Under the pieces are notes generated by a model, which saw nothing but the letters and a program-made list of their open reading frames with translations, searched no databases and was not told the DNA's origin. Position numbers and translations under genes: made by a program. Below, in pieces: positions 3,419 to 54,971 of a stretch of 64,000 nt of DNA. Every line of letters begins with the position of its first letter. The first letter of the stretch is position 1. The stretch lies in the sequence record NC_048045.1; one strand, written 5' to 3'.

Positions 3419-3458
3419 TGTCGTGAATCTTGACGTCCCTGGATGGTCGTGGCATCCA
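3419..3458 (+). promoter_or_regulatory. Promoter with GTCGTGAATC-TTGAC motif
   Basis: TGTCGTGAATCTTGACG, 17-nt spacer, CATCCA; intergenic upstream of the distal tail gene. Confidence 0.6.
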
Positions 3459-3486
3459 GGGACTCCCTTCTCGCATGGTTAACGTG

Positions 3487-4143
3487 ATGCCGAACTACAG
3501 CTTCCACGACGTGCTGTTCCCCGAGACCATCAGCTACGGCTCGTCGGGCGGTCCGAAGTTCAAGACCACGATCTTCCAGGCCGACTCGGGCTACGAGCAG
3601 CGCAACAAGGACTGGAGCGACGTGCGGCACGAGTACGATGTCGCCCAGTCGATCCGCTCGACCGAGGACATGGAAGAACTGCGAGCCTTCTTCATGGCCC
3701 GCAACGGCCGCGCCCACGGCTTCCGCTACAAGGACTGGGGCGACTTCCGCCTGAAGAACCAGTTGATCGGCGTCGGCGACGGCGTCACCAAGACCTTCCA
3801 GATCGTCAAGACCTACACCAGCACCGGGCACGACGGCACCGACTACACCTATACTCGCAACATCCGCAAGCCCAAGTGGGACTCGATCGCCGGCGTCAAA
3901 GTCGGGCCGGTCGTCCAGGTGGCTCCGACCAACTACGAGGTCGACTATTCGACCGGCCTGATGACCTTCGTCAACGCGCCCGCGCCCGACGCGCCAGTCA
4001 CCATTGGCCTGGGCGAGTTTCACGTCCCCGTGCGCTTCGACACGGACATGATGGACGTGACCCAGGAATTCTGGATGCGCGAGACGTGGCCCAACATCGC
4101 CATCGTCGAAATCCGCGACTATCAGGAGATCATCCTCCCGTGA
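3487..4143 (+). CDS. Distal tail protein, DUF2460/TIGR02217 (GTA-like)
   Basis: FHDVLFP...SGGPKFKT...SGYEQRN, GRAHGFRYKDW and VPVRFDTD motifs typical of DUF2460. ATG 3487 preferred to the upstream TTG. Confidence 0.85.
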   Translation: MPNYSFHDVLFPETISYGSSGGPKFKTTIFQADSGYEQRNKDWSDVRHEYDVAQSIRSTEDMEELRAFFMARNGRAHGFRYKDWGDFRLKNQLIGVGDGVTKTFQIVKTYTSTGHDGTDYTYTRNIRKPKWDSIAGVKVGPVVQVAPTNYEVDYSTGLMTFVNAPAPDAPVTIGLGEFHVPVRFDTDMMDVTQEFWMRETWPNIAIVEIRDYQEIILP

Positions 4144-5765
4144 AATCCGTCCCGCCGCTCCTGATGGAGCACATCCAGCAGGAGGTGACGACGCTGGCGA
4201 CCTGCATCACGATCGTGCGGCAGGACGGCAAGGCCTTCTTCTTGACCGACCACGACCGGCCGATCCTGTTCGAGAACCAGCACTTCGTCCCCTACGACTC
4301 CTACCAGCGCACCTCGATCCTGATGTCGTCGGAACTCGAAGTCGACACCGCCGACATCACCGCCTTCCTGACCTCCGATGGCGTCACCCGCGACGACGTG
4401 GCCTCAGGCCTGTTCGACTATGCCGCGATCAAGGTGCAGTTGCTCAACTACACCAGCCCGCAGGACGGCGCGATCCTGCTGCGCAAGGGCACCTTCGGCG
4501 AAGTGGTGATGAATCAGGACGAGACGTTCACGGCCGAAATTCGCGGCCTGACCCAGGTCCTGACCTATCGGGTGGGCGAGTCCTACGCGCCCGAGTGTCG
4601 CGCCGACCTGGGCGATCGCCGCTGCAAGATCGGCCTGATGCCTGCGGAATGGCAGGGCAACACCTATTACGCCACCAGCACCTGCGTGCTGGGCGAGGTC
4701 TCGGCCGCCAACTCCTTCGTCAACCTCGACGTCATCAACTGGAGCTTCGAGTCCGGCGACCTCAACACCGTCGTCACCGCGCCGGCGGGCTGGGTGGCCT
4801 ATGGCGATCCGACCAGCCGCTGGGTCTACAAGCACGACTGGTACAACCTTTTTCGCCCGCAACTGGGTGACAAGTTCATCGCCGCCACCCGCACGTCGAT
4901 CGACGACAAGCAGGAGATCGCCGGCATGTTCCAGGACATCAGCCTCCTCAGTGCTGGCGTCTCCGAAGAAGACCTCGATTCGGGCCTCTGCCGCGTCCGC
5001 TACAAGTCGTTCGTCGCGTGCCTCAACAACCGCGCCCAGTCGCGCGAGCGCCTGACCTGCATCAAGGTCGACGGGTCGGTCGAGACGATCTGGGACACCG
5101 GCGAGAAGAAGTACCCCGAGGACCGCTGGGTCGCCGTCAACGCCGACGACGTCCTTATCCCGGCCGGCACCCGAACCCTGCGCATCGACCTGTGGTCCAA
5201 GAAGCGCAATGTCCACGAAGAGGGCGTCGCCTACGACGGCATCAAGGCCTCGATCAACCTGCCCGACGGCACGGCCGGCAATGCCGACGTCTATGGTGGG
5301 GTGATGTTCAAGTGCATCCAGGCGGGCGTCAGCGGCGACACGCCTCCCGAATGGACCAACGAGATCGGCGCCACCTTCAACGACGGCACCGTCATCTGGC
5401 AGTGCGTCACCAACTACAAGCGCGTGGGCACGGTCGACACGGTCGACTCCAACAAGTCCTTCACCCCTGAGGGTATCGGCGAGCAGGGCGGCTTCTACGA
5501 CGGCGGCGTTCTCTACTGGGAGACCGGGCGCAACGCCGGCCGCGCCCAGGAGATCAAGCTCTGGTCGGGCGGGGTCTTCACGCTCTTCCAGCGTACCTAC
5601 TACCCGATCACCGAGGGCGACCGCTTCGTGGTCTATCCCGGCTGCGACAAGCGTCGCAGCACCTGCGGCGACAAGTTCAACAACATCCTCAACTTCCGCG
5701 CCGAGCCCGACGTGCCCGGCCAGGACATCTACTATCGCACGCCCAACGCGCCGGAGCAGGAATGA
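4140..5765 (+). CDS. Baseplate hub-like tail protein (DUF2163/BR0599 family) with internal insertion
   Basis: GTG start overlaps upstream TGA. FLTDHDR, CRADLGDRRC and PGCDKRRSTCGDKFNNILNFRAEPDVPG motifs. Confidence 0.8.
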   Translation: MKSVPPLLMEHIQQEVTTLATCITIVRQDGKAFFLTDHDRPILFENQHFVPYDSYQRTSILMSSELEVDTADITAFLTSDGVTRDDVASGLFDYAAIKVQLLNYTSPQDGAILLRKGTFGEVVMNQDETFTAEIRGLTQVLTYRVGESYAPECRADLGDRRCKIGLMPAEWQGNTYYATSTCVLGEVSAANSFVNLDVINWSFESGDLNTVVTAPAGWVAYGDPTSRWVYKHDWYNLFRPQLGDKFIAATRTSIDDKQEIAGMFQDISLLSAGVSEEDLDSGLCRVRYKSFVACLNNRAQSRERLTCIKVDGSVETIWDTGEKKYPEDRWVAVNADDVLIPAGTRTLRIDLWSKKRNVHEEGVAYDGIKASINLPDGTAGNADVYGGVMFKCIQAGVSGDTPPEWTNEIGATFNDGTVIWQCVTNYKRVGTVDTVDSNKSFTPEGIGEQGGFYDGGVLYWETGRNAGRAQEIKLWSGGVFTLFQRTYYPITEGDRFVVYPGCDKRRSTCGDKFNNILNFRAEPDVPGQDIYYRTPNAPEQE

Positions 5766-6187
5766 CCCGCGACGACATCGTGACCGAAGCGCGCCGCTAT
5801 GTGGCGCTCCAAACCCCCTGGCGCCATCGGGGTCGCACCGAACGCGGCCTCGACTGCATCGGGCTGGCGGTGATGATCTTCGAGAAGTACAACCTGGAGT
5901 ACATGGATCAGGATGGCTACGCGCGCACGCCCGACGGCGAGCGGTTCGTCGATGTGATCAAGGCCCACATGACCCTGGCCGACCCCACCGACCTCAAGCC
6001 CGGCATGTTGGTCCTGTTCAACGACGATGCCCGGCCCTGCCATGTGGGCATCCTGGCCCAGAAGCATGGGGTCATGACCCTGATCCACGCGACCGCCGAT
6101 AAGAAGCGCACGGTCGAAGAAATCTATGATCGCCGCTACGCCGCCCGGTTCCGGATGGCGTTCGATTTCCCCGGCGTTGAGGACTAA
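5762..6187 (+). CDS. NlpC/P60 family tail-associated peptidase
   Basis: TPWRHRGR...GLDCIGL (catalytic Cys), CHVGIL (His), IHA; GTA-like gene order. Confidence 0.85.
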   Translation: MTRDDIVTEARRYVALQTPWRHRGRTERGLDCIGLAVMIFEKYNLEYMDQDGYARTPDGERFVDVIKAHMTLADPTDLKPGMLVLFNDDARPCHVGILAQKHGVMTLIHATADKKRTVEEIYDRRYAARFRMAFDFPGVED

Positions 6188-6189
6188 GC

Positions 6190-9100: not shown

Positions 9101-9672
9101 GCGGGACGCAGTACGCCTGCGACACCCACGTCGCGGGCGAGAAGTTCATCTTCCTGGACGAGCGCTCGCTCGAACTCCAGGCCGAGAACCTCGACACCGC
9201 CGGGCAGAACCGCTGGTACAAGGCGGTCGGCTCGGGCATGTCGCTGTTCGAGACCGACGCCACCCAGATCAACTACCAGCCGCGCGACCTCATGCCCTAC
9301 CGGCCGTCGGACATCCGCCGCGCGATCGCCGGCGGGGACGTGACGGTCACCTGGAAGCGCCGCACGCGCTTCACCGCCACCATGAAGGACGGCACGGGCG
9401 TGGTTCCGGTCAACGAGGGCAGCGAAGCCTACGAGGCCTATGTGCTGGCCACGGCGTTCACGGGTGACCCTTCGCGTCAGGACGCGCCGGCGACTTTCGT
9501 GCGGAAATACGACCTGACGAGCCCCACCTTCACCTATACGGCGGCCGAGCAGACGGCCGATGGATTTGACGTGAATCTTGACACTCTCCACGTCGTGATC
9601 TATCAGTTGAGTTCGGCTGTTGGTCGGGGTTTCCCCGGCGCTCGCTCGATCGAGTCCTGGCAGGACTTCTAA
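6190..9672 (+). CDS. Tail tip / central fibre (host-specificity J-like, GTA orf15-like)
   Basis: STYGNVIPEIFGTARVAGNMIW, PAYRGLCYVVF, DFGNRIPQI and LLRGRRGT motifs; 1160 aa. Confidence 0.8.
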   Translation: MGAAIALPIVSAIVSTAISYIFPDEGPRLRDTKVSASTYGNVIPEIFGTARVAGNMIWSKPFTEKKKKKRAGKGGSYYNQYTYFCDFAMGFCKGPVKEVRRIWADGKVIYDTTGGSEVVDNNKYRFRFYAGDEEQLPDSLVSEDKGLDYAPAYRGLCYVVFDDFALADFGNRIPQIMAEVYAGDEGGTAITDVTSLGDDTPQPGGSFALDQCIIDTDRGYFYLVDQISDPRGGVLRRFLLSNGKEDRRELVQVAPKTSPSVYDSPALTSVRGLTSKGELLCVFGGINNYMRIEKLDPYSWTSLGTVGRSFPFENPDRPDFSLEFSNADFKTSRDDKGNYLTLTLGIFGEYNIFDPTSMTYVSKGHMAGWNGPGTPMYITARQGGSPSARRFYHVTYDGGPTLSVCSLGETLYHHPLPHPGPAGATGWAFWDEGDPGVVFFYTDGNQDRYLAKWSETTGALAWQTQLRNSDPVCGYPVWGMDARIKDNELHWVYIDHLFSINTSTGKWIDRTFDQDFYKTTNDKTADQVNDGDRGQLLSREVAYDHVIYDPRRNIVIGLGNPQVTNGIVHVGAYTGQKTNVGRIVEQLLVTTGQLTSNDYDLTPLYEIPVRGYGYATSTDVKSIISELRNLFMFDLVESDGKLVARVRGDQEADAEVPWQLLGSQSGPSDDKAEYWKETRMSESDLPSAIDLTYMNIDDDYNPSTAKSKRISSPVATMMSRQQVKTECNLVMDATEAKNRVNIMLYTQWDERTQHNTALPWAFAHLDASDLISVTMEDGRNYFDRIGSIEFGADFSSRLETYGTDSGAYLSEKVGDGGGAGRPTVVHAPKPVVGFIMNLPLLRDTHDTGANFSNWYSAIGQGAPGTFYGGTMFKSANSQDYVDLYQETESAEWGTVKGIVPPASRGWFALDWETKITIVPAVEFFELESITDDELWEGQNGFVVGNEVMQFRDAVENADGTWTIWNLLRGRRGTQYACDTHVAGEKFIFLDERSLELQAENLDTAGQNRWYKAVGSGMSLFETDATQINYQPRDLMPYRPSDIRRAIAGGDVTVTWKRRTRFTATMKDGTGVVPVNEGSEAYEAYVLATAFTGDPSRQDAPATFVRKYDLTSPTFTYTAAEQTADGFDVNLDTLHVVIYQLSSAVGRGFPGARSIESWQDF
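9568..9606 (+). promoter_or_regulatory. Motif promoter embedded in the 3' end of the tail-tip gene
   Basis: GACGTGAATCTTGACA-N17-TATCAG inside the CDS, in a locally AT-richer stretch upstream of the fibre genes. Confidence 0.45.
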
Positions 9673-9692
9673 GCTCCCTTTCCACAATCCCA

Positions 9693-9718
9693 CCGATCCC
9701 GGAGCGATCCGGGATCGG
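9693..9718. terminator. GCGA-tetraloop hairpin (terminator or processing site; no U-tract)
   Basis: CCGATCCCGGA-GCGA-TCCGGGATCGG, perfect 11-bp stem. Confidence 0.45.
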
Positions 9719-9743
9719 CCCTTGTCATAAAAGCCGTGGAACG

Positions 9744-10589
9744 ATGACCGACTACACGCCGATCCTGGGCATCCCCGAAGTCGCGCCCAACCAGAACCAA
9801 AAAGAAGACACGATCAACACCGGCTTCGCGATTCTGGAGGCGGCGCAGAACGACGACGTCCAGATCACGGTGACGTCCGGGACCTACAACGTCACCGCCG
9901 ACCAGTTCACCAAGGCCTTCGTGCATCGGTATTCGGGGCACGCCGACGCCACCGTGGTCGCGGTGATCCCGACCTCCGCCCGCTGGTTTGCCCTGTCGAA
10001 CGAAGGCGGGTTCGCCATGGGTCTGAAGGTCTTCGGGCAGGTGCCCGTCGTGACCATCCAGCCGGGCAAGATCGTCCTCTTCCAGTCCGACGGCGTCACC
10101 CTGCGCGCAGTGTCCGAGGGTGTCAGCCGCATCTTCGATCTCTCCGACGTCGACGGCTCCGATACGCCCTCCAACGGCCAGACCCTGGTCTGGAACTCGA
10201 CCTCCGGTCAGTTCGAGCCGGCCGATCTCCCGGCCGACGTCGATTTCTGGACGAGCGGGGCCACGGCCGGCAGCGGCGTGGTTCTGCGCAAGCTCTTCCT
10301 GCGGCCGGTGCGCTTCCTGGCCGATTTCCTGGGCTCGATCGCTAAGGCGGGCGTCGCCGCCACCGGCAGCGCCGTCTTCACGGTCAAGAAGACCACGGGC
10401 GTGACGACCACCAACGTCGGCACCATCACCTTCACCGGAACCACCGCCACCTTCTCCACCGATGTCGGGGCGGGTTCGGTCACCGTCAATTTCGGCGCCG
10501 GCGACATCATGACCATCACCGGTCCCGCCTCCGCCAACGCCACCCTCGCTGACATCGTCGCTTCCCTCAAGGGCGTCATCCTGCAATGA
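9744..10589 (+). CDS. DUF2793-like tail fibre-associated protein
   Basis: N-terminus MTDYTPILGIPEVAPNQNQKEDTIN resembles the DUF2793 anchor; paralogous to the N-terminus of the next gene. Confidence 0.6.
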   Translation: MTDYTPILGIPEVAPNQNQKEDTINTGFAILEAAQNDDVQITVTSGTYNVTADQFTKAFVHRYSGHADATVVAVIPTSARWFALSNEGGFAMGLKVFGQVPVVTIQPGKIVLFQSDGVTLRAVSEGVSRIFDLSDVDGSDTPSNGQTLVWNSTSGQFEPADLPADVDFWTSGATAGSGVVLRKLFLRPVRFLADFLGSIAKAGVAATGSAVFTVKKTTGVTTTNVGTITFTGTTATFSTDVGAGSVTVNFGAGDIMTITGPASANATLADIVASLKGVILQ

Positions 10590-15322: not shown

Positions 15323-15362
15323 TGTCGTGAATCTTGACATCGGCACAAATCCGGGCCATGGT
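15323..15362 (+). promoter_or_regulatory. Motif promoter of the lysis cassette
   Basis: TGTCGTGAATCTTGACA-N17-CATGGT immediately after the fibre stop codon. Confidence 0.65.
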
Positions 15363-17444: not shown

Positions 17445-17484
17445 TGTCGTGATCCTTGACATATCGACGTTCTTGCATTATGGT
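17445..17484 (+). promoter_or_regulatory. Variant motif promoter upstream of an ORF-free region
   Basis: TGTCGTGATCCTTGACA-N17-TATGGT. Confidence 0.6.
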
Positions 17485-17489
17485 CGCGC

Positions 17490-17753
17490 TTCTTCGACGG
17501 CATCCCACCGTCCAACATGGCTCGCGACCCACCGTTCGCAGGGACACGATCGCGACCAAGGCGGTAGCCGGAACGATGCTAGGCTGCAAAGCCAAGCCTC
17601 CGGAACACGCAGTAGCCGGCTGGAACGCTAGGCTCCTATGTCCAAACGGGGTACGGACTTCCTGAGCCTCCGGGCGATAGACCCCACCACCTCGCAAGAG
17701 GTTCACGCGTGATGCGGAGAAGGGCTGAAAAGCCCAAGTGTCTGGAAGGACAG
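17490..17753 (+). ncRNA. Candidate structured ncRNA (about 270 nt)
   Basis: Between a promoter and a terminator with no credible ORF; GNRA hairpins at 17582-17593, 17689-17702, 17722-17735 and 17739-17752. Confidence 0.55.
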
Positions 17754-17787
17754 AAGGCCCCGCCGGAGCGATCCGGCGGGCCTTTTT
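17754..17787. terminator. Intrinsic terminator, GCGA loop
   Basis: AAGGCCCCGCCGGA-GCGA-TCCGGCGGGCCTTTTT between convergent units. Confidence 0.8.
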
Positions 17788-17810
17788 CCGTTGGGGCGGA
17801 GGAAGTCCCC

Positions 17811-18605
17811 TTAGGCGTGGGCGCGGACGCGAACCTTGGACGTGACCGGCAGCGTCGGCGCCAGGGCGCCCACCTTGCCGACCACCTTGCCCAGGATGAC
17901 GATCTTGCCGGCGTCGACGTCGACGTGATCCTTCAGGTCCGCGTCGTAGATGCGGTAGGGGCCGGTCTTGCTTGGGCGGGTGATGTGCGCCACCTGCATG
18001 GCCTTGTTGAGCCCGTAGACGAACTCGCCGCCGGCCGCGTTGGGCTCGACGTCGCGGCGGACCACCGCCATGTCGCCCGGATTGAGGCCAGGGGCGAAGT
18101 CGTGGATCGCCGCCAGGGCCAGATCGGTGGGCTCGGCCTCGAAGCGCTCACGCAGCCAGTCCGGATCGAGGTTCCAGGTCCGCAGACGCTGGAACTCGCC
18201 GGCGCGAGGCTTGAAGGTCAGTTCCTCGACCGGGTTGGGCGAGCCGACCCCGAAGGTGATGTACTCGGGCGTGGTCTTCAGGACGTGGGCGATCTGCTCC
18301 AACACGTCGATGTGCGGCTTGACGCTGTCGGACTCGTACATGATGTACGCAGTGCGGGCCAGGGGCCGGCGCTCACCAGCCTGCTTCGGCTCCCAGCCGG
18401 GCTTGGTGCTGACGTCCTTGCGGGAATTGCTCTGCTGGGTCAGATAGACCCGCGAGGCGACTTGCTCCTGGGTCAGGCCCAGGCCCATGCGACAGGCGGT
18501 AATCCGCTGGCCGATGGTGCGAGGATGCGCGAGGTCGGCATCCTTGTGGATCAGGGAACGAGACCGGTGCGGAACACCCGGCTTCATCTCGATCACGGCT
18601 TGCAT
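17811..18605 (-). CDS. XRE-family HTH regulator with S24-like C-terminal domain (CI/LexA-like)
   Basis: TIGQRITACRMGLGLTQEQVASRV and YIMYESDSVKPHIDVLEQIAHVLKTTPEYI HTH; C-terminal PGDMAVV...ILGKVVG S24-type fold. Confidence 0.7.
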   Translation of the reverse strand: MQAVIEMKPGVPHRSRSLIHKDADLAHPRTIGQRITACRMGLGLTQEQVASRVYLTQQSNSRKDVSTKPGWEPKQAGERRPLARTAYIMYESDSVKPHIDVLEQIAHVLKTTPEYITFGVGSPNPVEELTFKPRAGEFQRLRTWNLDPDWLRERFEAEPTDLALAAIHDFAPGLNPGDMAVVRRDVEPNAAGGEFVYGLNKAMQVAHITRPSKTGPYRIYDADLKDHVDVDAGKIVILGKVVGKVGALAPTLPVTSKVRVRAHA

Positions 18606-18700
18606 TTTGTTCTCCTCCGTCCGTTGAGAACCGCGTCATTGGGTGTCGGTGTAACCCATGACATTCGCGATGGTTCCCAGACGCAACGTCTGTTTGCCAA

Positions 18701-18737
18701 TGTTGACAAAGAGGGATTTACACCCTCTTTGGCAACA
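18701..18737. promoter_or_regulatory. 15-bp inverted repeat, candidate operator
   Basis: TGTTGACAAAGAGGG-N7-CCCTCTTTGGCAACA (1 mismatch) upstream of the repressor-like gene; contains TTGACA. Confidence 0.5.
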
Positions 18738-18739
18738 CA

Positions 18740-23802: not shown

Positions 23803-23842
23803 AAGATAGCCTGAGGGGTCCCGAAAGTCAAGATTCACGACA
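23803..23842 (-). promoter_or_regulatory. Motif promoter of the nrd operon
   Basis: TGTCGTGAATCTTGACT-N17-TATCTT on minus; TTAACCAT overlaps the -10 (23797-23804). Confidence 0.65.
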
Positions 23843-24757: not shown

Positions 24758-24797
24758 ATGTCGTGTCTCCCGACAAGACATGTCAGGATTCACGACA
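24758..24797 (-). promoter_or_regulatory. Variant motif promoter
   Basis: TGTCGTGAATCCTGACA on minus; TTAACCAC at 24807-24814. Confidence 0.45.
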
Positions 24798-30226: not shown

Positions 30227-30852
30227 GCCGTCTTCTCCTGGAGCTTGGCCGCCACCATGTCCTGCATGGCGTAGTAGCAGCGGCGCGTGGCCTGGACGTC
30301 GGCGATTGCGGTGTGGGCGTCTTCGAAGCCTTCGCCGGTCAGGTGCTTGTGCAGGTCGATCAGCTTGGGCTTGCGATAGCCGCCCTGGCGCGAGGGCAGC
30401 TTCATCAGCGGCGTGCCCGCCACGATGGTGTCAAACATCGACTTGCCTTCGAACGGGTCGGCGTCGGGCCGGCCCATGACGCGGCGCACCACGTTGGTCA
30501 CGATCTTGTTGTCGAAGGAGATGTGGTTGTGCCCCACGATCACGTCGGCGACGGCGACGAGGTCCATGAAGGCCTCGATCGCGATGGCCTCGGTCATGCC
30601 GATCTTCTCGGAGATTTCCGGCGAGACGCCGTGGATGGCGGCGGCGCCGCCCTTGCCGTCGCGGCCAATCGTCCAATCGCTCAAGACGCTGGTCGGGACC
30701 GTCCCCAGGCTCAGGATCGTGTCGAGGCGGGCGGCCTCGCGGCGATCGGGATAGGCCAGGATCGCACCCAGTTGGACGATGCGGGGTTGCTCGTCCAGGG
30801 GCTTCTTGCCGTCCGGAAAACCGGTGGTCTCGGTGTCGTAAAAAAGGATCAT
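30223..30852 (-). CDS. DEDDh 3'-5' exonuclease (DnaQ-like)
   Basis: FYDTETTG, IHG, VGHNHISFD, AHTAIADV. Confidence 0.85.
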   Translation of the reverse strand: MILFYDTETTGFPDGKKPLDEQPRIVQLGAILAYPDRREAARLDTILSLGTVPTSVLSDWTIGRDGKGGAAAIHGVSPEISEKIGMTEAIAIEAFMDLVAVADVIVGHNHISFDNKIVTNVVRRVMGRPDADPFEGKSMFDTIVAGTPLMKLPSRQGGYRKPKLIDLHKHLTGEGFEDAHTAIADVQATRRCYYAMQDMVAAKLQEKTA

Positions 30853-30877
30853 CGGGGCGATCTCGTTCGGGAGTGTC

Positions 30878-30917
30878 TTGTTAACCAAGTTCCGGATGGG
30901 TGTCAAGATTCACGACA
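30878..30917 (-). promoter_or_regulatory. Motif promoter
   Basis: TGTCGTGAATCTTGACA-N17-TAACAA on minus; TTAACCAA overlaps the -10. Confidence 0.65.
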
Positions 30918-30924
30918 TCAAAAG

Positions 30925-31587
30925 TCACGAAGGATGACGCACGGCCTTGATGATTTCGTAGACGCGCTGCACCGACAGGCCCAGGTCCGCCGCGATCGAC
31001 GACACCGGCTCGCCGTCGGCGTAGCGCTTCTCGGTCCAGGCGTAGTGCGCCTTCTTGGTCTCCTCGCGCTTGGCCTTGGCCTCGGGCGCGTGGCGGTCGA
31101 TGAAGCGGTAGATCGCGATCCGCGAGACGCCGTATTGCTCGGCGATGAACGGCACGGGCGCGAAGCTGGTGAATTGCAGGACGATGTCGTCGGCGTGGTC
31201 GGCGAGGGCCATGTTGTGCTCCAGGGTATCGAGGGCGCGGTCGATCACCACCGCCGCGCGCTTGGAAGGCTGTTTGGTCAGGAAGCCGCAGGGGCGGCCG
31301 GCGGCGTAGGGCGGCTCGCACCCTTCGATGAGGTATTGTTCGGCGGTAGGGTCCAGCCGCTGGCCGGCCGCGTTCGCCAGCCACCAGTGGGTGCCGCCGT
31401 CGGGGTCGGGCGCGACCATGGGCCGCCAGGGGCCGTCGCGCCCGCCGGACAGATGCCAGAGCGCCTCGGAGGCGACATAGCAGTGCCCGGCGGTCGGGTT
31501 CGAAGCCGTGTACGCGGAACGGTAGGGCTCGCGCAGAAGCTCGGGTGTAAGGGCGCGCTGCACCGCTCTGAGGGTCTCGATGTCCAT
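30925..31587 (-). CDS. Hypothetical protein: Cys-His-Asp (papain/transglutaminase-like) N-domain plus tandem HTH C-domain
   Basis: ATG overlaps the polA TGA; GHCYVASE...THWWL...LDPT; GVSRIAIYR and DLGLSVQRVYEII HTH-like segments. Confidence 0.6.
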   Translation of the reverse strand: MDIETLRAVQRALTPELLREPYRSAYTASNPTAGHCYVASEALWHLSGGRDGPWRPMVAPDPDGGTHWWLANAAGQRLDPTAEQYLIEGCEPPYAAGRPCGFLTKQPSKRAAVVIDRALDTLEHNMALADHADDIVLQFTSFAPVPFIAEQYGVSRIAIYRFIDRHAPEAKAKREETKKAHYAWTEKRYADGEPVSSIAADLGLSVQRVYEIIKAVRHPS

Positions 31588-33833
31588 CAGTGCGTCTCGG
31601 CCCAGGTGCGGCCCCACTTTACGTCCACGTCGACCGGCAGGCGGAAGTCGAACCGGTGCCCGGCTTCCTTCGCCGCGTCGACGATGTTGCGGCGGCAGAT
31701 TTCCTTGATCGCAGGGTCGTCGCGCACGGCGACTTGCATTTCGTCGTGGACCCAGGCCAGCACCGCGTAGTCGCCGTCCCAGCCGTGGACGAGGCCGTCG
31801 TCTTCGTTGAAGGTCTCGAAGTTGACGCACCAGCCCTTGGCGATGGTCGCGCCCGCGCCCTGGAGCTTGGTGTTGAGCGCCGAGTGCTTGGCCCGCACAT
31901 AGAGCAGGCGCCCGTCGAGCGCGTCGACATAGCCGCGCTTGGCCTCCCGCTGCACGGCCTTGACGACCTGTTGTAGCGCGGGGATGCGCGTCATAATGCG
32001 GCGGCGCATTTCCGAGCCCAGGGCCTTGGCCTTGGCGACGTTCATCGTCAGGGTCGGATCGACGGTGCAGCCCAGCTTGTAGTCCTGAGCGCCGTAGATC
32101 ATGGCGTAGATGAAGGTCTTGGCGGTGTCGCGCGACTCCATTTCCATGGCGGCTTGGTGGACGCCGTGGACATCGCCATCCAGGACGATCTTGCCGTACT
32201 GGCCGTTGTCGAACTCCGCCATGAAGTGCGCAAGACAGCGCAGTTCGATGCCCGCTTGGTCGGCGCCCATGAGGACCCAGCCCTCGGGCACGTAGAAGAG
32301 GTCGCGGCTGTCCCAGCCGTGGTCGCCCTCGCGGCCCTTCATCAGGACCTTCTTGGTGACCACCTCGCCCTTCTCGTTGAGCGTGAACTCGCCCTCGGGC
32401 GTCAGCACCGGCCGGCCCCGGATTTGCTTGCCGTCCGGGCCGAGCAGCGGGACCTTCTTGGCCTCGTCCTGCCATTGCGGCGGCGACTTGAAGACGACGC
32501 GGGGGACCTGGGCGATGTTGGGATTGGAGTGCGAGGCGCGGTTGGTCACCGTGCCGCCCACGTTGACGCGGCCGTGAATCTTGCCGTCGCCGTTCCATTC
32601 CTCGCACTTGGCGAGCCAGCCGTTCTTGCCGTCGACCAGTTGTCCCAGGCGCTTCTTGTAGTAGAAGATTTCCGCCAGGGTCTCGCAGATCGGGATGACC
32701 AGCTTCTTGGTGTTCTCGTCCTCGGCCTTGGCCAGATCGCGCAGCACCTCGTCGTCGACGACGGGGGCGTTGTTCTCGGTGAACTCCTGGGGCTCCCAGC
32801 CGTAGACCTTGGTCAGGCGGTCGACGATCTGCTGGCGCGAGTTCGGGTTGAACTCGGTCAGCTTCACCGGGCAGAACGGGGCGCCGGCGGTGCGGTCGCC
32901 CTTCATCGGGTCCTTGTACTTGACGTCGCGCGTGGGCACCGTCACCTCGGCCCAGTGCTCGCGCGTGTCGTCCTCGCCGAACTCCGGGCGCGGACGATAG
33001 GAGACCTGATCCTTCTCGGGCTTGCCGGTCTCGGGCGAGCAGTAGGTGGTCGACTTGTTGCGCTTCAACCACTTGCCCGGAACCCACCAGGAGCCGAAGT
33101 GCTCGATCGCCTCGTCCGACATCTTGGTGTGGGCCGTGCGCAGTTCGTCTTCCAGGCGGCGCGCGCGCTCGCGGTGGAACGGGAAGCCGTTGCGCTGCAC
33201 CCGCTCCATCATGTCGTGAACCATGTGTTCGAGCGTGATCGCGGTCTTGGACCACGGCCGGCTCTCGATCTTGCGCCACAGGGCCTCGGTGACCTCGACG
33301 TCCTGGATGGCGTAGTCTTCCATGTCCTGGTTCCAGGAGCCCCAGACGTAGCGGCTGATTTCCGCCTTGTCGGTGATGCCCTTGGCCTTGGCCTCTTCCT
33401 CGGCGACGTCGGCATAGTCGCCCTTGGGGAAGCCCAGGCGCTGGCCCCAGGCCCCCAGTTCGTGCGAGCCGATGTAGCCGCCGTAGAGGTCGCCGCGCTT
33501 CCACATCCGGAAGTCGTCGTCCTTCAGGTCGGCGAACAGCATCCGCGTCATCACCAGGGTGTCGCGCAGGATGCCTTGCGGGTTGAACTTGTCGCCGTAG
33601 ACCTTCTTGAGGGCCTCGCAGTCGAAGCCCACGATGTTGTGGCCGATCAACATCTCGGCCTCGTTCAGCATCTTGATGCCTTCGAGGATGTTGTCCTCGC
33701 GCTTGTTGCGGTGGAAGACCCACCGCTGGCGCGTGTCGGCGTCCTTGATCACCAGGATGTGGATGCGCGTGAGTTGCAGTAGCAGCCCATCGGTTTCCAA
33801 GTCGAAGAGGAGGCGGCGCTTACGCAGCTTCAT
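31587..33833 (-). CDS. polA: Family A DNA polymerase (T7 gp5-like) with 3'-5' exonuclease
   Basis: FDLETDG, GHNIVGFD, GADQAGIELR, RDTAKTFIYAMIYG, LNTKLQGAG, WVHDEMQ. Confidence 0.93.
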   Translation of the reverse strand: MKLRKRRLLFDLETDGLLLQLTRIHILVIKDADTRQRWVFHRNKREDNILEGIKMLNEAEMLIGHNIVGFDCEALKKVYGDKFNPQGILRDTLVMTRMLFADLKDDDFRMWKRGDLYGGYIGSHELGAWGQRLGFPKGDYADVAEEEAKAKGITDKAEISRYVWGSWNQDMEDYAIQDVEVTEALWRKIESRPWSKTAITLEHMVHDMMERVQRNGFPFHRERARRLEDELRTAHTKMSDEAIEHFGSWWVPGKWLKRNKSTTYCSPETGKPEKDQVSYRPRPEFGEDDTREHWAEVTVPTRDVKYKDPMKGDRTAGAPFCPVKLTEFNPNSRQQIVDRLTKVYGWEPQEFTENNAPVVDDEVLRDLAKAEDENTKKLVIPICETLAEIFYYKKRLGQLVDGKNGWLAKCEEWNGDGKIHGRVNVGGTVTNRASHSNPNIAQVPRVVFKSPPQWQDEAKKVPLLGPDGKQIRGRPVLTPEGEFTLNEKGEVVTKKVLMKGREGDHGWDSRDLFYVPEGWVLMGADQAGIELRCLAHFMAEFDNGQYGKIVLDGDVHGVHQAAMEMESRDTAKTFIYAMIYGAQDYKLGCTVDPTLTMNVAKAKALGSEMRRRIMTRIPALQQVVKAVQREAKRGYVDALDGRLLYVRAKHSALNTKLQGAGATIAKGWCVNFETFNEDDGLVHGWDGDYAVLAWVHDEMQVAVRDDPAIKEICRRNIVDAAKEAGHRFDFRLPVDVDVKWGRTWAETH

Positions 33834-34898: not shown

Positions 34899-34928
34899 AT
34901 GGTTAACCGATGTCGTGAATCACGTCAA
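34899..34928 (-). promoter_or_regulatory. Promoter with inverted half-motif in the spacer and TTAACCAT on the -10
   Basis: TTGACG-N17-TAACCA on minus; GTCGTGAATC at 34912-34921 on plus. Confidence 0.55.
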
Positions 34929-34947
34929 GAAATGTCGTCAGGGACGA

Positions 34948-35754
34948 CTACTTCTGACCGTTGGCGGCGGCGATCTCGGCATCCGTCAGCAGACGGCGGC
35001 CGGTGGTCTTGACCTCGCCGCGCCAGACGCGGTCGGCCATCTTCAGGAAGGCCTTGGCGACCTTCTGCTTGTTCTCGTGGCCGATGTGACGCACCATCGA
35101 CAGCGGCCAGCGCGGGGGAAGGGCGTAGAAGAACATCACCCCCGGCTTGGTGTAGGCGTCGACGACGAAGTCGCCGGCCATCCGCTTGTTGACCGAGAAC
35201 GACTGGTCGCCCAGGATCGCGGTGTTGGTGTCGTCGTAGTAGCCGATGCCCAGCCTGATCTTGTCGATCGCGCTGTCGTAGGCCAGCCAGATGAGGCGCC
35301 CGTCACCCAGGCTCACCTCGTCGACCTTCCAGTCCTCAGGGTGGCCCCAGACGGCGTCGTGCGCCATCCGGATGGCCTCGGCCAGCAGGGTGCGTTTCAT
35401 GGGCGCGGGCTTGATCAGTTCCCTGGTCGGCCGGCCTTCTGCGTCGGTGCCTTCGAGGTAGTACGCCATCCCCGGACCCTCGCCGCTCAGGTCGAACGCT
35501 TCCAGGCCGTTGAACATCGGGGCCAGCCGCCCCGTCTTCAGGCGGATGCCTTCGCGCTCGATCTGGTCGGCGATCTCGTAGGCGAAACCCGGCTTGAGAT
35601 TCATGGTCATGACGTGCGTCATGTTGAGGCCCGTGGGGGACTCATGGCCCACGCCGATCTGGATCGACTGGGTTTCGTCGGTGACCAGGGCGTAGAGGAA
35701 GCCGCCCTTGGGGCTCGTGTCCATGGGGACGCGGCGGGAGACGAGAAGGGTCAT
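34948..35754 (-). CDS. Hypothetical protein (two internally similar halves)
   Basis: 268-aa ORF in a minus-strand operon. Confidence 0.65.
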   Translation of the reverse strand: MTLLVSRRVPMDTSPKGGFLYALVTDETQSIQIGVGHESPTGLNMTHVMTMNLKPGFAYEIADQIEREGIRLKTGRLAPMFNGLEAFDLSGEGPGMAYYLEGTDAEGRPTRELIKPAPMKRTLLAEAIRMAHDAVWGHPEDWKVDEVSLGDGRLIWLAYDSAIDKIRLGIGYYDDTNTAILGDQSFSVNKRMAGDFVVDAYTKPGVMFFYALPPRWPLSMVRHIGHENKQKVAKAFLKMADRVWRGEVKTTGRRLLTDAEIAAANGQK

Positions 35755-38154: not shown

Positions 38155-38194
38155 GGGATGTCATGGTTAACGAAGGGTGTCAAGATTCACGACA
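38155..38194 (-). promoter_or_regulatory. Motif promoter (divergent from the RNA island)
   Basis: TGTCGTGAATCTTGACA-N17-CATCCC on minus; TTAACCAT in the spacer. Confidence 0.6.
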
Positions 38195-38223
38195 TTGACT
38201 GTCGTGACGCACCACGCTAGATA
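38195..38223 (+). promoter_or_regulatory. Sigma70-type promoter of the large ncRNA
   Basis: TTGACT-N17-TAGATA; GCTAGATA resembles the Caulobacter housekeeping -10. Confidence 0.65.
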
Positions 38224-39224: not shown

Positions 39225-39256
39225 CGAAAAATGTGTCGTGAGCGACGACTTTTCTC

Positions 39257-40274: not shown

Positions 40275-40314
40275 TGTCGTGAATCTTGACACTCCGGGTT
40301 GAGCTAGGCATTAT
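40275..40314 (+). promoter_or_regulatory. Motif promoter of the cadherin-repeat gene
   Basis: TGTCGTGAATCTTGACA-N17-CATTAT. Confidence 0.7.
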
Positions 40315-45973: not shown

Positions 45974-46041
45974 ATGTCGCCCATCACGACGTCACGTGTC
46001 AAGATTCACGACTTGACCAGCGGCGTTAACCATGGCACGGT
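45974..46041. promoter_or_regulatory. Divergent promoter pair with motif and TTAACCAT
   Basis: Minus: GTCGTGAATCTTGACA (46012-45997). Plus: TTGACC-N17-CACGGT with TTAACCAT at 46026-46033. Confidence 0.55.
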
Positions 46042-47880: not shown

Positions 47881-47882
47881 GG

Positions 47883-48332: not shown

Positions 48333-48393
48333 GGAAGCGATCCTTCAAGGTGGAAGAGGGGCCGGCGGGCCGGCCCTCGGGTTGCAGGGTGGA

Positions 48394-49953: not shown

Positions 49954-49974
49954 GGGAGACTCCTTGCTCGCGGC

Positions 49975-52098: not shown

Positions 52099-52137
52099 AG
52101 TCAACTCCAGGGGTTGGGATCAGTGATGTCGCCGATC

Positions 52138-52226
52138 CTTCTAGCTACCGCCTCCGGTTCTGTCAACACACTCGATCCGGCTTTTTGGTCGTGAATCTTG
52201 ACGTTCGCGCGCGGGTCAGGCACAAT
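52138..52226. promoter_or_regulatory. Divergent promoters
   Basis: Minus: TTGACA-N17-TAGAAG (52166-52138). Plus: GTCGTGAATCTTGACG-N17-CACAAT (52188-52226). Confidence 0.6.
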
Positions 52227-52232
52227 TTTCGC

Positions 52233-52481
52233 ATGTGGTCAATCCGCAACATCACGTCCGAAGCCTCCCACTCGATTCGCACCTGCACCTCCAAGGACTA
52301 CCCGTGGCCTGAGCGGGGGTCGGAGGGCTGCATTTGCCGCGAACCGGGCGCGCGCCGCGACCGGGACTTCATGTTGCTGGTCGATCGCCATGGCGAGATT
52401 CAATGGTACGCGAGGACGACATGCCCGATCCACGGCCCGAAGATCACGACGGTGGACGTCGCAACAAAATCCACGACCTGA
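52233..52481 (+). CDS. Hypothetical protein (probably leaderless mRNA)
   Basis: ATG 7 nt after the -10; CIC...CPIH motif. Confidence 0.5.
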   Translation: MWSIRNITSEASHSIRTCTSKDYPWPERGSEGCICREPGARRDRDFMLLVDRHGEIQWYARTTCPIHGPKITTVDVATKSTT

Positions 52482-52828
52482 TCGTCGGTGACCCGCGCGA
52501 GGACCCGCGCTACAACCGCAAGCTCAGCAACCGCGACAAGACCGCCTTCCTCTGCGGGGTCCTGCGCCATCCGCCCCAGGCGTTCGACCTGGACCTGCCG
52601 TTCCCGGTCGAGGACTGGGTTGCCTCGGACGACAACTCCCTGATCGTGGCCGGCCTCTACCTGTCGGACCTGCGGCTCCAGTTCTACGACGCCCTGGAAG
52701 TCAAGCCCGAGGACGAGCACGGCTTCGTGCGCCAGGGCGAGGCCGAGTTCTGGCACCATGCCTTCAACGTCATGGTCGAGCGCCGCAGCCACGGCGTGCT
52801 GGTCTCCGACGGGCGCGTGCTCAATTGA
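52421..52828 (+). CDS. Hypothetical protein
   Basis: GAGGA SD, ATG 52421, GC3-rich codons. Confidence 0.55.
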   Translation: MPDPRPEDHDGGRRNKIHDLIVGDPREDPRYNRKLSNRDKTAFLCGVLRHPPQAFDLDLPFPVEDWVASDDNSLIVAGLYLSDLRLQFYDALEVKPEDEHGFVRQGEAEFWHHAFNVMVERRSHGVLVSDGRVLN

Positions 52829-53196
52829 CCCTGCTCTATGACGGCGCCCTGGAAGGCAACTGCGTCGGCCGCTTCGTGCGCGCCGGCCAGACCTTCGACG
52901 TCATTCGCCCCGGCTACGACGCCCAGGGCGTCAAGCGCCAGACCTGGACCCAGATCATCCATGAGGGTGTGCCGGTCTTCGAGGTCAAGGTCCGCACCGA
53001 CCTCGACAACGTGATCGACCGCTTCGACACGCTCTGGGAGCGCCACATCGGCGATGACGCCGACTTCCTGGCCCGCGCCCTGGCCTCGGTCAAGCGCGAG
53101 CGGACCTCCAAGTTCCGCGACGGCAAGTCCGGCGTCGCCCCGGCCCCGACCCTGGTCCACGACGATCATCCCTACCCGCCGCACTATGTCGCATAA
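52825..53196 (+). CDS. Hypothetical protein
   Basis: TTG start overlapping the upstream TGA. Confidence 0.6.
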   Translation: MTLLYDGALEGNCVGRFVRAGQTFDVIRPGYDAQGVKRQTWTQIIHEGVPVFEVKVRTDLDNVIDRFDTLWERHIGDDADFLARALASVKRERTSKFRDGKSGVAPAPTLVHDDHPYPPHYVA

Positions 53197-53212
53197 TGTT
53201 GGCGCGAGACTG

Positions 53213-53241
53213 TTGACACCTCTGATTTTGTGACATAGAAG
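53213..53241 (+). promoter_or_regulatory. Sigma70-type promoter of the recombinase operon
   Basis: TTGACA-N17-TAGAAG. Confidence 0.6.
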
Positions 53242-53270
53242 CCTCCTCGACGACAACGAAGGAGGCTTTC

Positions 53271-53897
53271 ATGCCCAAGCGGATCAAAGGCAAGCGCATC
53301 GCCCTGCACCAAGCCAAGGTGCTGGACGCCCAAGAGTTCCAGATGGTTCTCGACCGCGCCGAGCAGGGGGACAACCCGCTGCGCGACCGCGTGCTCTTCA
53401 AGCTCTCTTTCTATTGCGGCATGCGTGTCGCCGAGATCGCCGGCATGGAGTGGCGCAAGCACCTCCTCGACGCCAGCGGCCGGCTGCGTCCCGCCCTCCA
53501 CGTCACCCACGACATCGGCAAGAACGCCGTCGCCCGCCACGTCCCGATCGAGGCGTCGCTGGCGGCTGACCTGCGCGCCCTGCGCAAGGAACGCCCCAAC
53601 GACCGCTTCGTTATCTACCCGCTGCGCGCCTCGATGCGCGGTGGTCCCGAGAAGACCGACGCCAACACCCTGGCCCAGTATATGCGCCGCCTCTATCGTG
53701 AGGTCGGCCTGGACGGGGCCTCGTCGCACTCGGGTCGCCGCACCTTCATCACCGATCTGGCGCGCAAGGCGAACATGGCCGATTGCTCGCTCCGGGACAT
53801 CCAGGAGATGGTTGGTCACCGGCGGATCGAAACGACCGGGACCTATATCGAGACGAGCCCCCGCCAGGACCGGCTCGTCAACATGGTCCTGCGATAG
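53271..53897 (+). CDS. Tyrosine recombinase (catalytic domain only, XerC/D-like)
   Basis: CGMRVAEI (R), DIGK (K), SHSGRRT (HxxR), MVGH (H), TGTY (Y); GGAGG SD. Confidence 0.87.
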
Positions 53898-53906
53898 GGG
53901 GCGGCG

Positions 53907-54314
53907 ATGACCTTCATCTGCACCGAACTGGACAACGCCACCCCCGTCGATCTGGACGCGGCCGAAGCCCTGCTCGCGCCGCGCGCCCGGCCCAACTTCG
54001 CCAAGGCCAAGGGCATCTGCCGTGAGTGCGGCGCGCCCAAGAACGAGCGCCGCCTGGGCGCAGACTTCTGCTCGGCCCGCTGCCGCTCGGACTTCCACAA
54101 CCGGGCCAAGATGGAGGGCGCCTCGATCGTCCACATCATCAAGCGCTGGCGCCGTTACCGCCGGCCCGGCGACTTCGCCCTGATGACCAAGATGGCCGAC
54201 GACCTGATCCGCATGGACAAGGCGCTCAACCGCAATTTCTACCCCGATCCGCCGACCACCGCCCACGCCAAGGTCGTCGCCACCAACATCGCCGGCCGCC
54301 GCCGGCGCGCCTGA
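53907..54314 (+). CDS. Hypothetical Zn-finger protein
   Basis: CRECG...FCSARC. Confidence 0.6.
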   Translation: MTFICTELDNATPVDLDAAEALLAPRARPNFAKAKGICRECGAPKNERRLGADFCSARCRSDFHNRAKMEGASIVHIIKRWRRYRRPGDFALMTKMADDLIRMDKALNRNFYPDPPTTAHAKVVATNIAGRRRRA

Positions 54315-54328
54315 AGAAGGAGTACAGC

Positions 54329-54583
54329 TTGAACCCACCCACCGAAAAGCCCGTCTACGCCATCGAGAGCGGGGGCTATCTGTTCGAGGTCCATCGGGCG
54401 CCGGACGATCACCCCCGCGCCTATCTGGGCTACTGCGACGGCGAACTGAGCGCCAGCGGCGACAGCGTCGGCGTGCTGCTGCGCGTCCTGGCCCGCAAGC
54501 ACGCGGCGCCCAAGCGCACGGCTCAGGTCATCGATTTCACCGCCGAAAAGCTCAAGCGCCTGCGCGCGGTGGTGGCGGCCTGA
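54329..54583 (+). CDS. Hypothetical protein
   Basis: GAAGGAG SD then TTG. Confidence 0.55.
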   Translation: MNPPTEKPVYAIESGGYLFEVHRAPDDHPRAYLGYCDGELSASGDSVGVLLRVLARKHAAPKRTAQVIDFTAEKLKRLRAVVAA

Positions 54584-54939
54584 TGGCGTCCGAAATAGAA
54601 GAGCGCCTGGACCCGAAACTGCTGGCTCCGCTGATCTACCGCTACTTCTACAATGGCCCCGTCGGCGGTGCGGCCCAACGGCTGGCGCGGATCATCCGCA
54701 ACCATGCCATGGGCTTGCCGATCATGACCTTCGACGAGGTGTTCGCCGAGTATCTCGCCGACCGCTTTGGCCTCGACGAGGACGCCATCGCCGCCGAGCG
54801 CGCCGTCTTCTGGAAGGCGATGAACGGCATGGGCGAGCCGGACCCGATCGACCGCTTTTACCGCTACGCCCAGGCCAAGGAACTCCTCGACTGCGTCAAG
54901 GTGACCCTCGAAAAACGTCGTCCGCAACAACTGTCATGA
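54583..54939 (+). CDS. Hypothetical protein
   Basis: TGATG coupling. Confidence 0.6.
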   Translation: MASEIEERLDPKLLAPLIYRYFYNGPVGGAAQRLARIIRNHAMGLPIMTFDEVFAEYLADRFGLDEDAIAAERAVFWKAMNGMGEPDPIDRFYRYAQAKELLDCVKVTLEKRRPQQLS

Positions 54940-54971
54940 ATCTTGACACCTGTCGGGAAAGGAGGCTAGAT
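54932..54971 (+). promoter_or_regulatory. Variant motif promoter of the primase gene
   Basis: TGTCATGAATCTTGACA followed by GCTAGAT. Confidence 0.55.

Follow-up and report, generated by a model that had tools for sequence, protein, structure and literature searches.

Why should a phage place nearly the same 15-bp sequence in front of genes for its virion and genes for its replication? The question is raised by a stretch of 64,000 nucleotides, referred to as the window, which is 100% identical to positions 62001-126000 of the genome of Caulobacter phage CcrBL10 (MH588544 / NC_048045; 220,934 bp; Poindextervirus, phiCbK-like) and which contains distal tail genes, the lysis cassette, a replication and nucleotide module, an RNA island and part of a small-gene region. 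The recurrent word, GTCGTGAATCTTGAC, joins ten upstream bases containing a GAATC to the TTGAC of a -35 box. An initial annotation had regarded it as the box of a phage activator with a logic similar to MotA, or of a host or phage GcrA that recognizes GANTC sites methylated by CcrM. Our analysis suggests, with a probability of roughly two in three, that GTCGTGAATCTTGAC combines promoter and operator, with a -35 box for the host polymerase fused to a dyad site for a predicted phage-encoded dimer. Positions refer to the window unless they are marked as genome positions.

Distribution of the element in the genome of CcrBL10

The eight exact copies of GTCGTGAATCTTGAC and the four variants that had been proposed for the window were all recovered (Table 1), and not a single exact copy appeared in 100 dinucleotide-preserving shuffles of the same sequence. 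With up to three mismatches, the window holds 16 sites where 1.6 would be expected. A motif scan of the whole genome and of relatives, which had been recommended earlier, returned 15 exact copies in CcrBL10, 25 sites with at most two mismatches, and equivalents in the five related phages that were compared as whole genomes, namely phiCbK, Brevundimonas phage Bajun, Colossus, CcrBL9 and Brevundimonas phage Gurke. Counted genome-wide in CcrBL10, 22 sites belong to promoters, which we refer to as class M, and none of them is found between about 120 and 205 kb of the genome. The near-matches 51181+ and 58427- are located within genes and were set apart from the promoter sites. A further stretch, GCCGTGAATCTTGCC at 32571-32585 (+), is antisense inside polA and is kept in phiCbK and Bajun, which most likely reflects conservation of the coding sequence and not a promoter.

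The view that every site precedes a co-oriented gene is correct for 11 of the 12 sites in the window, which in the deposited annotation are located 44-205 nt upstream of gp323, gp319, gp317, gp310, gp307, gp301, gp295, gp294, gp291, gp282 and gp275. The exception, 17446+, faces a convergent gene encoding the CI-like protein gp313. It belongs to a unit composed of a promoter, a structured RNA of about 290 nt (z = -2.5) and an intrinsic terminator (17759-17780), and Bajun carries a site devoid of GANTC at the same place. In the deposited annotation of the whole genome, the element heads virion and replication operons alike, as had been claimed. The units preceded by class M sites comprise the portal, scaffold, capsid, tail, tail-fibre and lysis genes, the tRNA block, the operons of ribonucleotide reductase (RNR), the exonuclease, the methylase together with A1 and PolA, and the helicase, besides the non-coding RNA (ncRNA), the resolvase-terminase operon and several operons of uncharacterised function.

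Two promoter classes with a common -35 box

In the class M sites of CcrBL10, TTGAC is present in 21 of 22 cases and extended to TTGACA in most of them. All ten bases upstream of it and the T that precedes them are about as informative as the -35 box itself, and the -10 region is weak and variable. The -10-like hexamer described at a distance of 17 nt holds only loosely, with a spacer of 17 found at 8 of the 12 window sites and with boxes that are heterogeneous and weak. A hexamer score of at least 4 at a spacer of 16-18 was obtained for 7 of the 12 sites, compared to 6% of the other TTGAC sequences in the window.

A second group of promoters, termed class E, displays the consensus cTGGCg-N5/6-GTG-TTGACAg-N17-TAGAAG, followed by the conserved leader CGACGACAAC..GGAGG. 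Its approximately 22 copies are located in the window at 52162 (-) and 59181 (+) and between 135 and 201 kb of the genome, and serve blocks of small genes and rIIA/rIIB. Both classes share TTGACA but differ in the bases directly upstream, and only class E contains a strong -10 box. Because the two bases preceding TTGAC are TC in class M and TG in class E, TC is not a sigma requirement in this case. No phage sigma factor was detected in the genome, where the Pfam family Sigma70 region 2 found no match. Class M, with replication, virion, lysis, tRNA/ncRNA and packaging units, and class E, with small-gene blocks, would constitute two promoter classes of the phage.

According to an RNA sequencing study of phiCbK infection, replication genes peak by 15 min and virion and lysis genes follow in the middle or late phase (PMC10688885). 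Since class M sites head both early replication and later virion genes, the element marks a class and not timing by itself. A search of RNA reads with the window sequence retrieved one wastewater RNA sequencing metagenome, which contains 6% of the words in form of contigs that cannot show transcription starts.

Dyad symmetry and operator pairs

GTCGTGAATCTTGAC is a pseudo-palindrome of the form GTC..GA.n.TC..GAC, whose right half is the -35 box. Written as GTCGTGA.A.TCTTGAC, it is self-complementary at 5 of 7 pairs around the middle base of GAATC. The mean complementarity at the axis through the centre of GAnTC amounts to 0.69 of eight pairs in CcrBL10, compared to about 0.2 at most other axes, and the same axis yields values of 0.70 in phiCbK, 0.62 in Colossus, 0.57 in Bajun, 0.51 in CcrBL9 and 0.46 in Gurke.

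Half-sites are also found in symmetric arrangements, with 24 sites in CcrBL10 and 14 in Colossus (half-site GCCAGGA) located within two mismatches of the palindrome of the respective phage, compared to 0-3 in shuffled genomes, with 0-2 in those of CcrBL10, and 0-3 if the half-site of another lineage was used. In CcrBL10, GTCGTGAATCACGTC (34912), GTCATGAATCATGAC (genome 19239), GTCGTGATTTACGAC (genome 139737) and GTCGTGGTTAACGAC (genome 205725) are symmetric sites that lack a -35 box, and Colossus contains the perfectly symmetric GCCAGGAATCCTGGC (117434), equally without -35, and five more sites with at most two mismatches. The near-perfect GTCGTGATTTACGAC (genome 139737-139751), which is identical in phiCbK, is located between the -10 box and the Shine-Dalgarno sequence of a GTG-TTGACA promoter that drives the operon of an RtcB-like tRNA-splicing ligase. 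An operator between gp297 and gp298 is found at orthologous positions in CcrBL10 and Colossus within the conserved flanks tatGGTTAAC-N4-site-AAG. It has the sequence GTCGTGA.A.TCACGtC in CcrBL10 and phiCbK as opposed to GCCAGGA.T.TCCTGtC in Colossus. Both halves have changed together, which amounts to a compensatory change.

Operators also occur as pairs at a distance of exactly 22 bp, with six such pairs in CcrBL10, about six in phiCbK and two to three in Bajun. By chance, any one offset should yield about 0.05 pairs, and spacings other than 22 bp were observed 0-2 times. Four of the six pairs of CcrBL10 are contained in the window (24760/24782, 34912/34934, 38179/38201 and 45976/45998), and other partners are found in the start region of the class-E-type RtcB promoter and in the spacer of the promoter that directly precedes the site of the terminase operon. 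Downstream of the motif, a further copy of the 5-mer had been weak at first count (4 vs 1.3 expected) and became clear only in the form of these pairs. The dyad, the symmetric sites and the exact 22-bp pairs together point to a dimeric protein that would occupy neighbouring sites on the same helical face in a cooperative manner.

The upstream box follows the lineage of the phage

The PolA protein of phiCbK is 94% identical to that of CcrBL10 and the one of Bajun, whose host belongs to a different genus, 73%. In both phages the element is kept at orthologous promoters with diverged flanks. Colossus, CcrBL9 and Gurke show the class M architecture at orthologous promoters with a different 5' box, and the promoter of RNR alpha provides a clean orthologous series across the six phages. 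The sequence preceding TTGACA is GTCGT followed by GAATC in CcrBL10, phiCbK and Bajun, GCCAG followed by (G/T/A)A(A/T)TC in Colossus, GACGC followed by nA(A/T)TC in CcrBL9 and GTTGT followed by AA(A/T)TC in Gurke. C. crescentus CB15 is the shared host of CcrBL10, Colossus and CcrBL9. Since these three phages use three different 5-mers and Bajun uses GTCGT on Brevundimonas, the box tracks the lineage of the phage and not its host. Among the matches listed in bacterial and viral collections, the element was found in multiple copies only in phiCbK-like records, and those listed from bacterial collections were scattered single matches and one contig with two, with no Caulobacter vibrioides record among them.

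The word AAACGTGACTC of Colossus was considered as a variant motif and rejected, as it is intragenic, antisense to genes and without TTGAC. Separately, GGAGTCACGTTT (sense strand) occurs at least five times within 42 kb of Colossus (10441, 17296, 27280, 30375, 30822, 33435), mostly inside genes. It contains a GANTC and has no TTGAC attached.

Candidate proteins for reading the element

Candidates for a reader were chosen from DNA-binding proteins among those conserved in all six phages, with gp300 considered besides. The CI-like gp313, which is conserved in all six, belongs to PHROG 4 ('transcriptional repressor', E = 1e-11). The helix SKSQITRYL of gp272 is identical in the three phages with a GTCGT box and altered in the other three. 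Its predicted fold, with a predicted local distance difference test score (pLDDT) of 62, has no significant match in the PDB, and partial matches to C.BclI, C.Kpn2I, P22 c2 and HipB are not significant. Finally, gp300 contains a C-terminal HTH_23 domain (E = 5e-8) and shows sub-threshold similarity to Mu Mor (21.3 bits vs a cut-off of 24.9), to sigma-70 region 4 and to a PHROG late transcriptional activator. The protein evolves fast, and at its position Colossus and CcrBL9 carry unrelated membrane-like open reading frames (ORFs). Each of gp272, gp313 and gp300 fits the role only partly, and we regard them as candidates.

Autoregulation of gp313 via the element was rejected, since the inverted repeat in its promoter is a different one and a class M operator is lacking there. 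This region (18606-18739, -) contains the element gatgtgTTGCCAA ... TTGGCAA with an inverted repeat, and phiCbK, Bajun and Colossus all retain its first arm. Two further proposals were dismissed, the TgrL-like gp199 as lineage-specific reader, since its recognition helix hardly varies among the six phages, and gp041/gp040, located beside a perfect palindrome, as an ImmA/ImmR-like pair, since gp041 is a transglutaminase-like cysteine protease.

A probable composite promoter-operator and its possible mode of action

The sequences show the copies and where they stand relative to promoters, the dyad, the symmetric sites, the spacing of 22 bp between paired sites and a box that changes with lineage. 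From these we infer that a protein dimer binds the element, that it is encoded by the phage and how it acts on transcription. The 3' part, (TC)TTGAC(A), would be an ordinary sigma-70/sigma-73 -35 box for the host RNA polymerase. In its full length of 15-17 bp, the element (T)GTCGTGA.A.TCTTGAC(A) would constitute a dyad binding site with its axis on the middle base of GAATC at about -38, where the -35 box doubles as imperfect promoter-proximal half of an ideal site GTCGTGA.n.TCACGAC. The predicted reader would be a dimeric DNA-binding protein of the phage, pairs of which would bind cooperatively 22 bp apart.

As the site covers the whole -35 box, a bound dimer should exclude sigma region 4. For the same reason, and because partner sites cover the -10 boxes of gp307 and the helicase, the start region of RtcB and a spacer in the terminase region, we slightly favour negative, operator-type (or dual) control over activation. 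It is quite possible that the protein would act as position-dependent dual regulator similar to lambda CI or the C proteins of restriction-modification (R-M) systems.

Several observations weigh against this interpretation. The upstream bases of class E also vary between lineages on one host, and a lineage-specific sequence alone does not prove that its reader is encoded by the phage. Part of the dyad score originates from GA/TC and TG/CA pairs, which possibly have other causes, and in CcrBL9 and Gurke the dyad signal is weak and no symmetric sites were found with the guessed half-sites. None of the candidates matches the distribution of the boxes cleanly. The putative recognition helix of gp313 is not the same in CcrBL10 and Bajun and is almost identical in Colossus and Gurke, a gp272 homologue of a metagenomic phage with the helix SKSQVTRLL keeps GTCGTGAATC-TTGAC, which weakens the mapping of helix to box, and homologues of gp300 are found only in phiCbK and Bajun, thus in the lineage with the GTCGT box, and are absent in Colossus and CcrBL9. 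With a repressor of all class M promoters alone, the early timing of replication and the late timing of virion genes in phiCbK is not accounted for. Finally, weak -10 boxes and partner sites at -60 would also suit an activator.

Activation provides the strongest alternative, which we consider possible though doubtful. According to this scenario, an early helix-turn-helix (HTH) protein of the phage, either gp272 or gp300, would bind mainly the perfect left half at about -42, contact sigma region 4 or the C-terminal domain of the RNA polymerase alpha subunit (alpha-CTD) and switch on class M promoters with their weak -10, while repressing transcription where its site covers the -10 box or the start. 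Class II activators, and lambda CI at PRM, act from the position on which the left half is centred, the -10 boxes of class M are weak and variable compared to the strong TAGAAG of class E, and the partners found upstream at about -60 would be in line with activators bound in tandem. Moreover, gp272 sits behind a GTG-TTGACA promoter and gp300 shows the described sub-threshold similarity to Mor and a late activator. However, activator-dependent phage promoters such as those of MotA, Mor/C and CII usually lack a good -35 box, whereas 21 of 22 class M sites retain the consensus. In addition, the outer GAC of the -35 box is part of the dyad, so that sigma region 4 and the second subunit would clash, and several partner sites are located over the -10 box.

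GANTC as probable consequence of symmetry

The GAATC, which had been described as invariant, is retained as GANTC in 21 of the 22 promoter copies of CcrBL10, with 17446+ as the exception. In the proposal built on it, CcrM-methylated GAATC would be read by host GcrA or by its phage homologue gp193, resulting in promoters that are sensitive to methylation and cell cycle. What stands of this proposal is the class-specific element and the phage factor, with the box following lineage, and what does not is GcrA/CcrM methylation, which we find improbable.

The connection is attractive. The product of an early-block gene, gp193, matches host GcrA over the DNA-binding and sigma-interacting domains. It keeps the latter and, in place of the guanine-reading arginines R33 and R42 of the host protein, carries the conservative residues K and R. 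In its full-length form GcrA (PF07750) is also present in phiCbK and Bajun and absent in Colossus and CcrBL9, and in Gurke it is reduced to an ORF with the DNA-binding domain only. Fixation of GANTC at the element is confined to the clade that has full-length GcrA, with 21/22 sites in CcrBL10, 20/20 in phiCbK and 13/20 in Bajun, compared to 7/17 in Colossus, 3/9 in CcrBL9 and 1/9 in Gurke. Moreover, GANTC is depleted in the genome of CcrBL10, with 307 observed sites vs 443 expected from a third-order Markov estimate, and about a third of its 60 GAATC sequences fall in class M elements. However, the fixation of the G at position 6, although coinciding with GcrA, amounts to a single phylogenetic event.

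The properties of GcrA itself argue against its role at the element. The remark that the flanks in TGAATCT differ from its preference is borne out, as the sequence does not fit the preferred context YGAKTCK and its other strand, AGATTCA, is ranked 32nd among NGANTCN contexts and was used as low-ranked site for host GcrA (Haakonsen 2015, PMC4647560). GcrA boxes are found at about -20, about -30 or between +2 and +30 (PMC5887438, PMC9976885), whereas the GAATC of the element spans about -40 to -36 with its centre at about -38, a region upstream of the -35 box from which the linker of GcrA and sigma region 4 are modelled to keep the DNA-binding domain (PMC9976885, PMC5887438). As a monomer contacting seven bases (TGATTCG), GcrA can explain neither GTCGT nor the dyad. 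Its base-contacting residues (R33, N34, I37, H41 and R42 in the host) are K-S-C-D-R in CcrBL10 and R-A-I-R-R in Bajun despite an identical motif. In the GcrA-positive Bajun, 7 of 20 equivalent promoters, all genuine-looking, are devoid of GANTC, as is the ncRNA promoter of CcrBL10. Conversely, the symmetric operators of Colossus contain a central GANTC in the absence of GcrA.

An origin in the symmetry of the site is more likely, as a half-site that ends in GA and is reflected about a single base gives GA.n.TC. The dyad with half-sites ending in GA accounts in the same way for GANTC in the operators of Colossus and for TC in front of TTGAC in class M. It is thus most likely that GANTC in the element is a by-product of dyad symmetry and not a GcrA/CcrM switch, although methylation of the central GANTC may modulate the binding of the predicted factor. 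For the methylase gp295, no relative in Pfam or the PDB was found that would tell its specificity. The GcrA homologue of Bajun (30556-31188, -) contains two tandem GcrA DNA-binding domains followed by one sigma-interacting domain, and the ORF of Gurke (87960-88199, -) a GcrA-like DNA-binding domain with no recognisable sigma-interacting domain.

Alternatives that invoke no dedicated factor

The ten upstream bases could also act directly on the host RNA polymerase, as an extended -35 box or UP-like element recognized by sigma region 4 or alpha-CTD that would do no more than make promoters strong. In class M of all lineages, TTGACA follows TC and an A/T step is found at -39/-38, which resembles the general promoter consensus tcTTGACat and a proximal UP subsite. 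Still, we judge this very improbable in light of three 5-mers in three phages of one host, one of which is shared with a phage of another genus, the G+C-rich and highly specific 5' half, the symmetric copies without -35 box and the 22-bp pairs, and because there is no sign of bacterial enrichment among the matches listed. That the upstream bases are functionless hitch-hikers on promoter cassettes spread by duplication or gene conversion, as the many identical copies per genome and the lineage-specific sequences in both classes might suggest, is hardly credible, since conservation ends sharply at the edges of the element with flanks beyond 17 bp not shared between copies of a genome, the 15-mer is kept at orthologous promoters between randomised flanks at 73% PolA identity, and the gp297/gp298 operator has undergone compensatory change on both sides.

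Features of the window

Table 1. Class M and class E promoters, operators and genes of candidate readers in the window, with interpretations as predicted from sequence.
Feature	Position	Strand	Context
Class M promoter-operator, exact	3420..3434	+	heads gp323 (gene transfer agent (GTA)-like glycoside hydrolase) and distal tail genes
Class M promoter-operator GACGTGAATCTTGAC	9568..9582	+	heads tail fibre gp319
Class M promoter-operator, exact	15324..15338	+	heads endolysin (gp317)/lysis cassette
Class M variant GTCGTGATCCTTGAC, no GANTC, ncRNA unit	17446..17790	+	TTGACA-17-TATGGT
Class M promoter-operator, exact	23827..23841	-	heads RNR alpha/beta and dUTPase
Class M promoter-operator GTCGTGAATCCTGAC	24782..24796	-	heads gp307-gp309
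Partner operator	24760..24774	.	exactly 22 bp downstream of 24782; centre about -16, over -10; genome 86760
Class M promoter-operator, exact	30902..30916	-	heads exonuclease gp301
Symmetric operator without -35, GTCGTGA.A.TCACGtC	34912..34926	.	between gp297 and gp298
Partner operator-like site GTCGTCAGGGACGAC, 3 mismatches	34934..34948	.	22 bp from 34912; genome 96934
Class M promoter-operator, exact	38179..38193	-	heads gp295 methylase, A1-like gp296, gp297, C5-methylase, PolA
Partner operator	38201..38215	.	22 bp upstream of 38179; centre about -60; genome 100201
Operator-like palindrome GTCGTGAGCGACGAC	39235..39249	.	RNA island, directly upstream of TTGACA promoter; genome 101235
Class M promoter-operator, exact	40276..40290	+	heads gp294
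Class M promoter-operator, exact	45998..46012	-	heads helicase gp291
Partner operator-like site	45976..45990	.	22 bp downstream of 45998; centre about -16; genome 107976
Class M promoter-operator, exact	52188..52202	+	heads gp282-gp277; back-to-back with class E promoter
Class E promoter core GTGTTGAC-N17-TAGAAG	52162..52169	-	drives rIIA/rIIB
Class E-like promoter	59181..59188	+	serves gp273-gp272
Class M promoter-operator GTCATGAATCTTGAC	54933..54947	+	heads gp275 (PE-PGRS-like)
gp272, XRE/Cro-type HTH	59839..60255	+	138 aa from upstream start; tentative candidate reader
gp313, CI-like HTH (PHROG 4, transcriptional repressor)	17811..18605	-	candidate reader
gp300, C-terminal HTH	30925..31419	-	candidate reader

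Relation to known systems

The exact motif was not found in our literature search, nor was a description of promoters of phiCbK in the literature searched. Gill 2012 contains no such description for this phage and uses the word 'promoter' once. The promoters identified here share properties with several known systems. In resemblance to GcrA/CcrM promoters (PMC4647560, PMC5887438, PMC9976885), they are sigma-70 promoters with GANTC in a phage that encodes a GcrA homologue, from which they differ by the 32nd-ranked context, the location upstream of -35, the dispensability of GANTC in Bajun and the longer dyad site.

A phage-specific box that defines a promoter class on the host sigma-70 polymerase is reminiscent of the middle promoters of T4. 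However, the MotA box replaces the -35 box at about -30, is asymmetric and needs AsiA (no search for an AsiA homologue was made in this phage), whereas class M keeps its -35 box and has a dyad at -38. The MotA-like logic of the initial annotation therefore fails in detail, since a retained -35 and a dyad-symmetric site with partner sites are operator-like. Mu Mor/C and other late activators of phages are dimeric HTH proteins whose sites are dyads just upstream of or overlapping the -35 box, and gp300 resembles Mor below threshold, but Mor/C promoters have a poor -35 with a centre at about -43.5, and gp300 is absent from Colossus and CcrBL9 despite the same promoter architecture.

The small dimeric XRE/Cro-type HTH proteins exemplified by R-M C proteins and lambda CI at OR bind cooperatively to palindromes near the -35 box with an action that depends on position. 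Palindromic boxes at or over -35 and adjacent, presumably cooperative sites are shared with class M. In contrast to class M, these systems are single autoregulated loci, and their spacing and the hybrid use of the -35 box differ. Closest in genomic distribution are P1 C1, with its many scattered operators, and the 'stoperators' of mycobacteriophage L5 gp71, where 20-30 near-identical sites for one phage protein are found genome-wide, many over the -35 box of promoters for lytic functions. Unlike class M, those phages are temperate with asymmetric sites, while the phiCbK-like family is regarded as lytic and its dyad uses the -35 box as proximal half.

Implications for the biology of phiCbK-like phages

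Besides the element, GTTAAC or TTAACCA(T/C), which we take to be a CtrA half-site or SciP-type motif, is found within -60 to +80 of 9 of the 22 class M promoters and at none of class E. These class M stretches, which make up 1.4% of the genome, contain 11 of its 35 GTTAAC sequences, in the window at 3478, 30880, 34902, 38166, 45960 and 46025, besides other class M promoters. The association of GTTAAC with class M is also observed in Colossus, CcrBL9, Gurke and Bajun, and it looks like an input from a host factor that is common to all lineages. Full CtrA sites were placed in the left arm by the work describing CtrA in phages. A more far-reaching model, which we regard as rather unlikely, envisages an operator network similar to those of P1 and L5, where one phage dimer, perhaps gp313, could sit on the -35 box of practically all promoters for replication, morphogenesis, lysis and packaging in phages supposed to be strictly lytic. 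Together with the host CtrA/SciP half-sites TTAACCAT at these promoters, it would gate or defer the entire lytic programme according to the cell-cycle state of the host. If true, the network would provide the molecular basis of the proposed 'lytic deferment', and the co-evolution of the half-site with its protein would insulate related phages in one host from each other.

In Caulobacter, a model for studies of the cell cycle, phiCbK is the classic phage. Its attractive epigenetic link to the host via GcrA/CcrM is probably wrong, and the CtrA/SciP-type half-sites at class M promoters provide the better-supported connection. The analysis provides a map of two promoter classes with about 22 sites each, which makes published RNA sequencing data of infection interpretable and offers parts for reporters. 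The element points to a predicted global regulator of a jumbo phage, and a -35 box that would at once form one half of a dyad operator, with partners 22 bp away, presents a clean natural case of co-evolution between regulator and site across phage genera.

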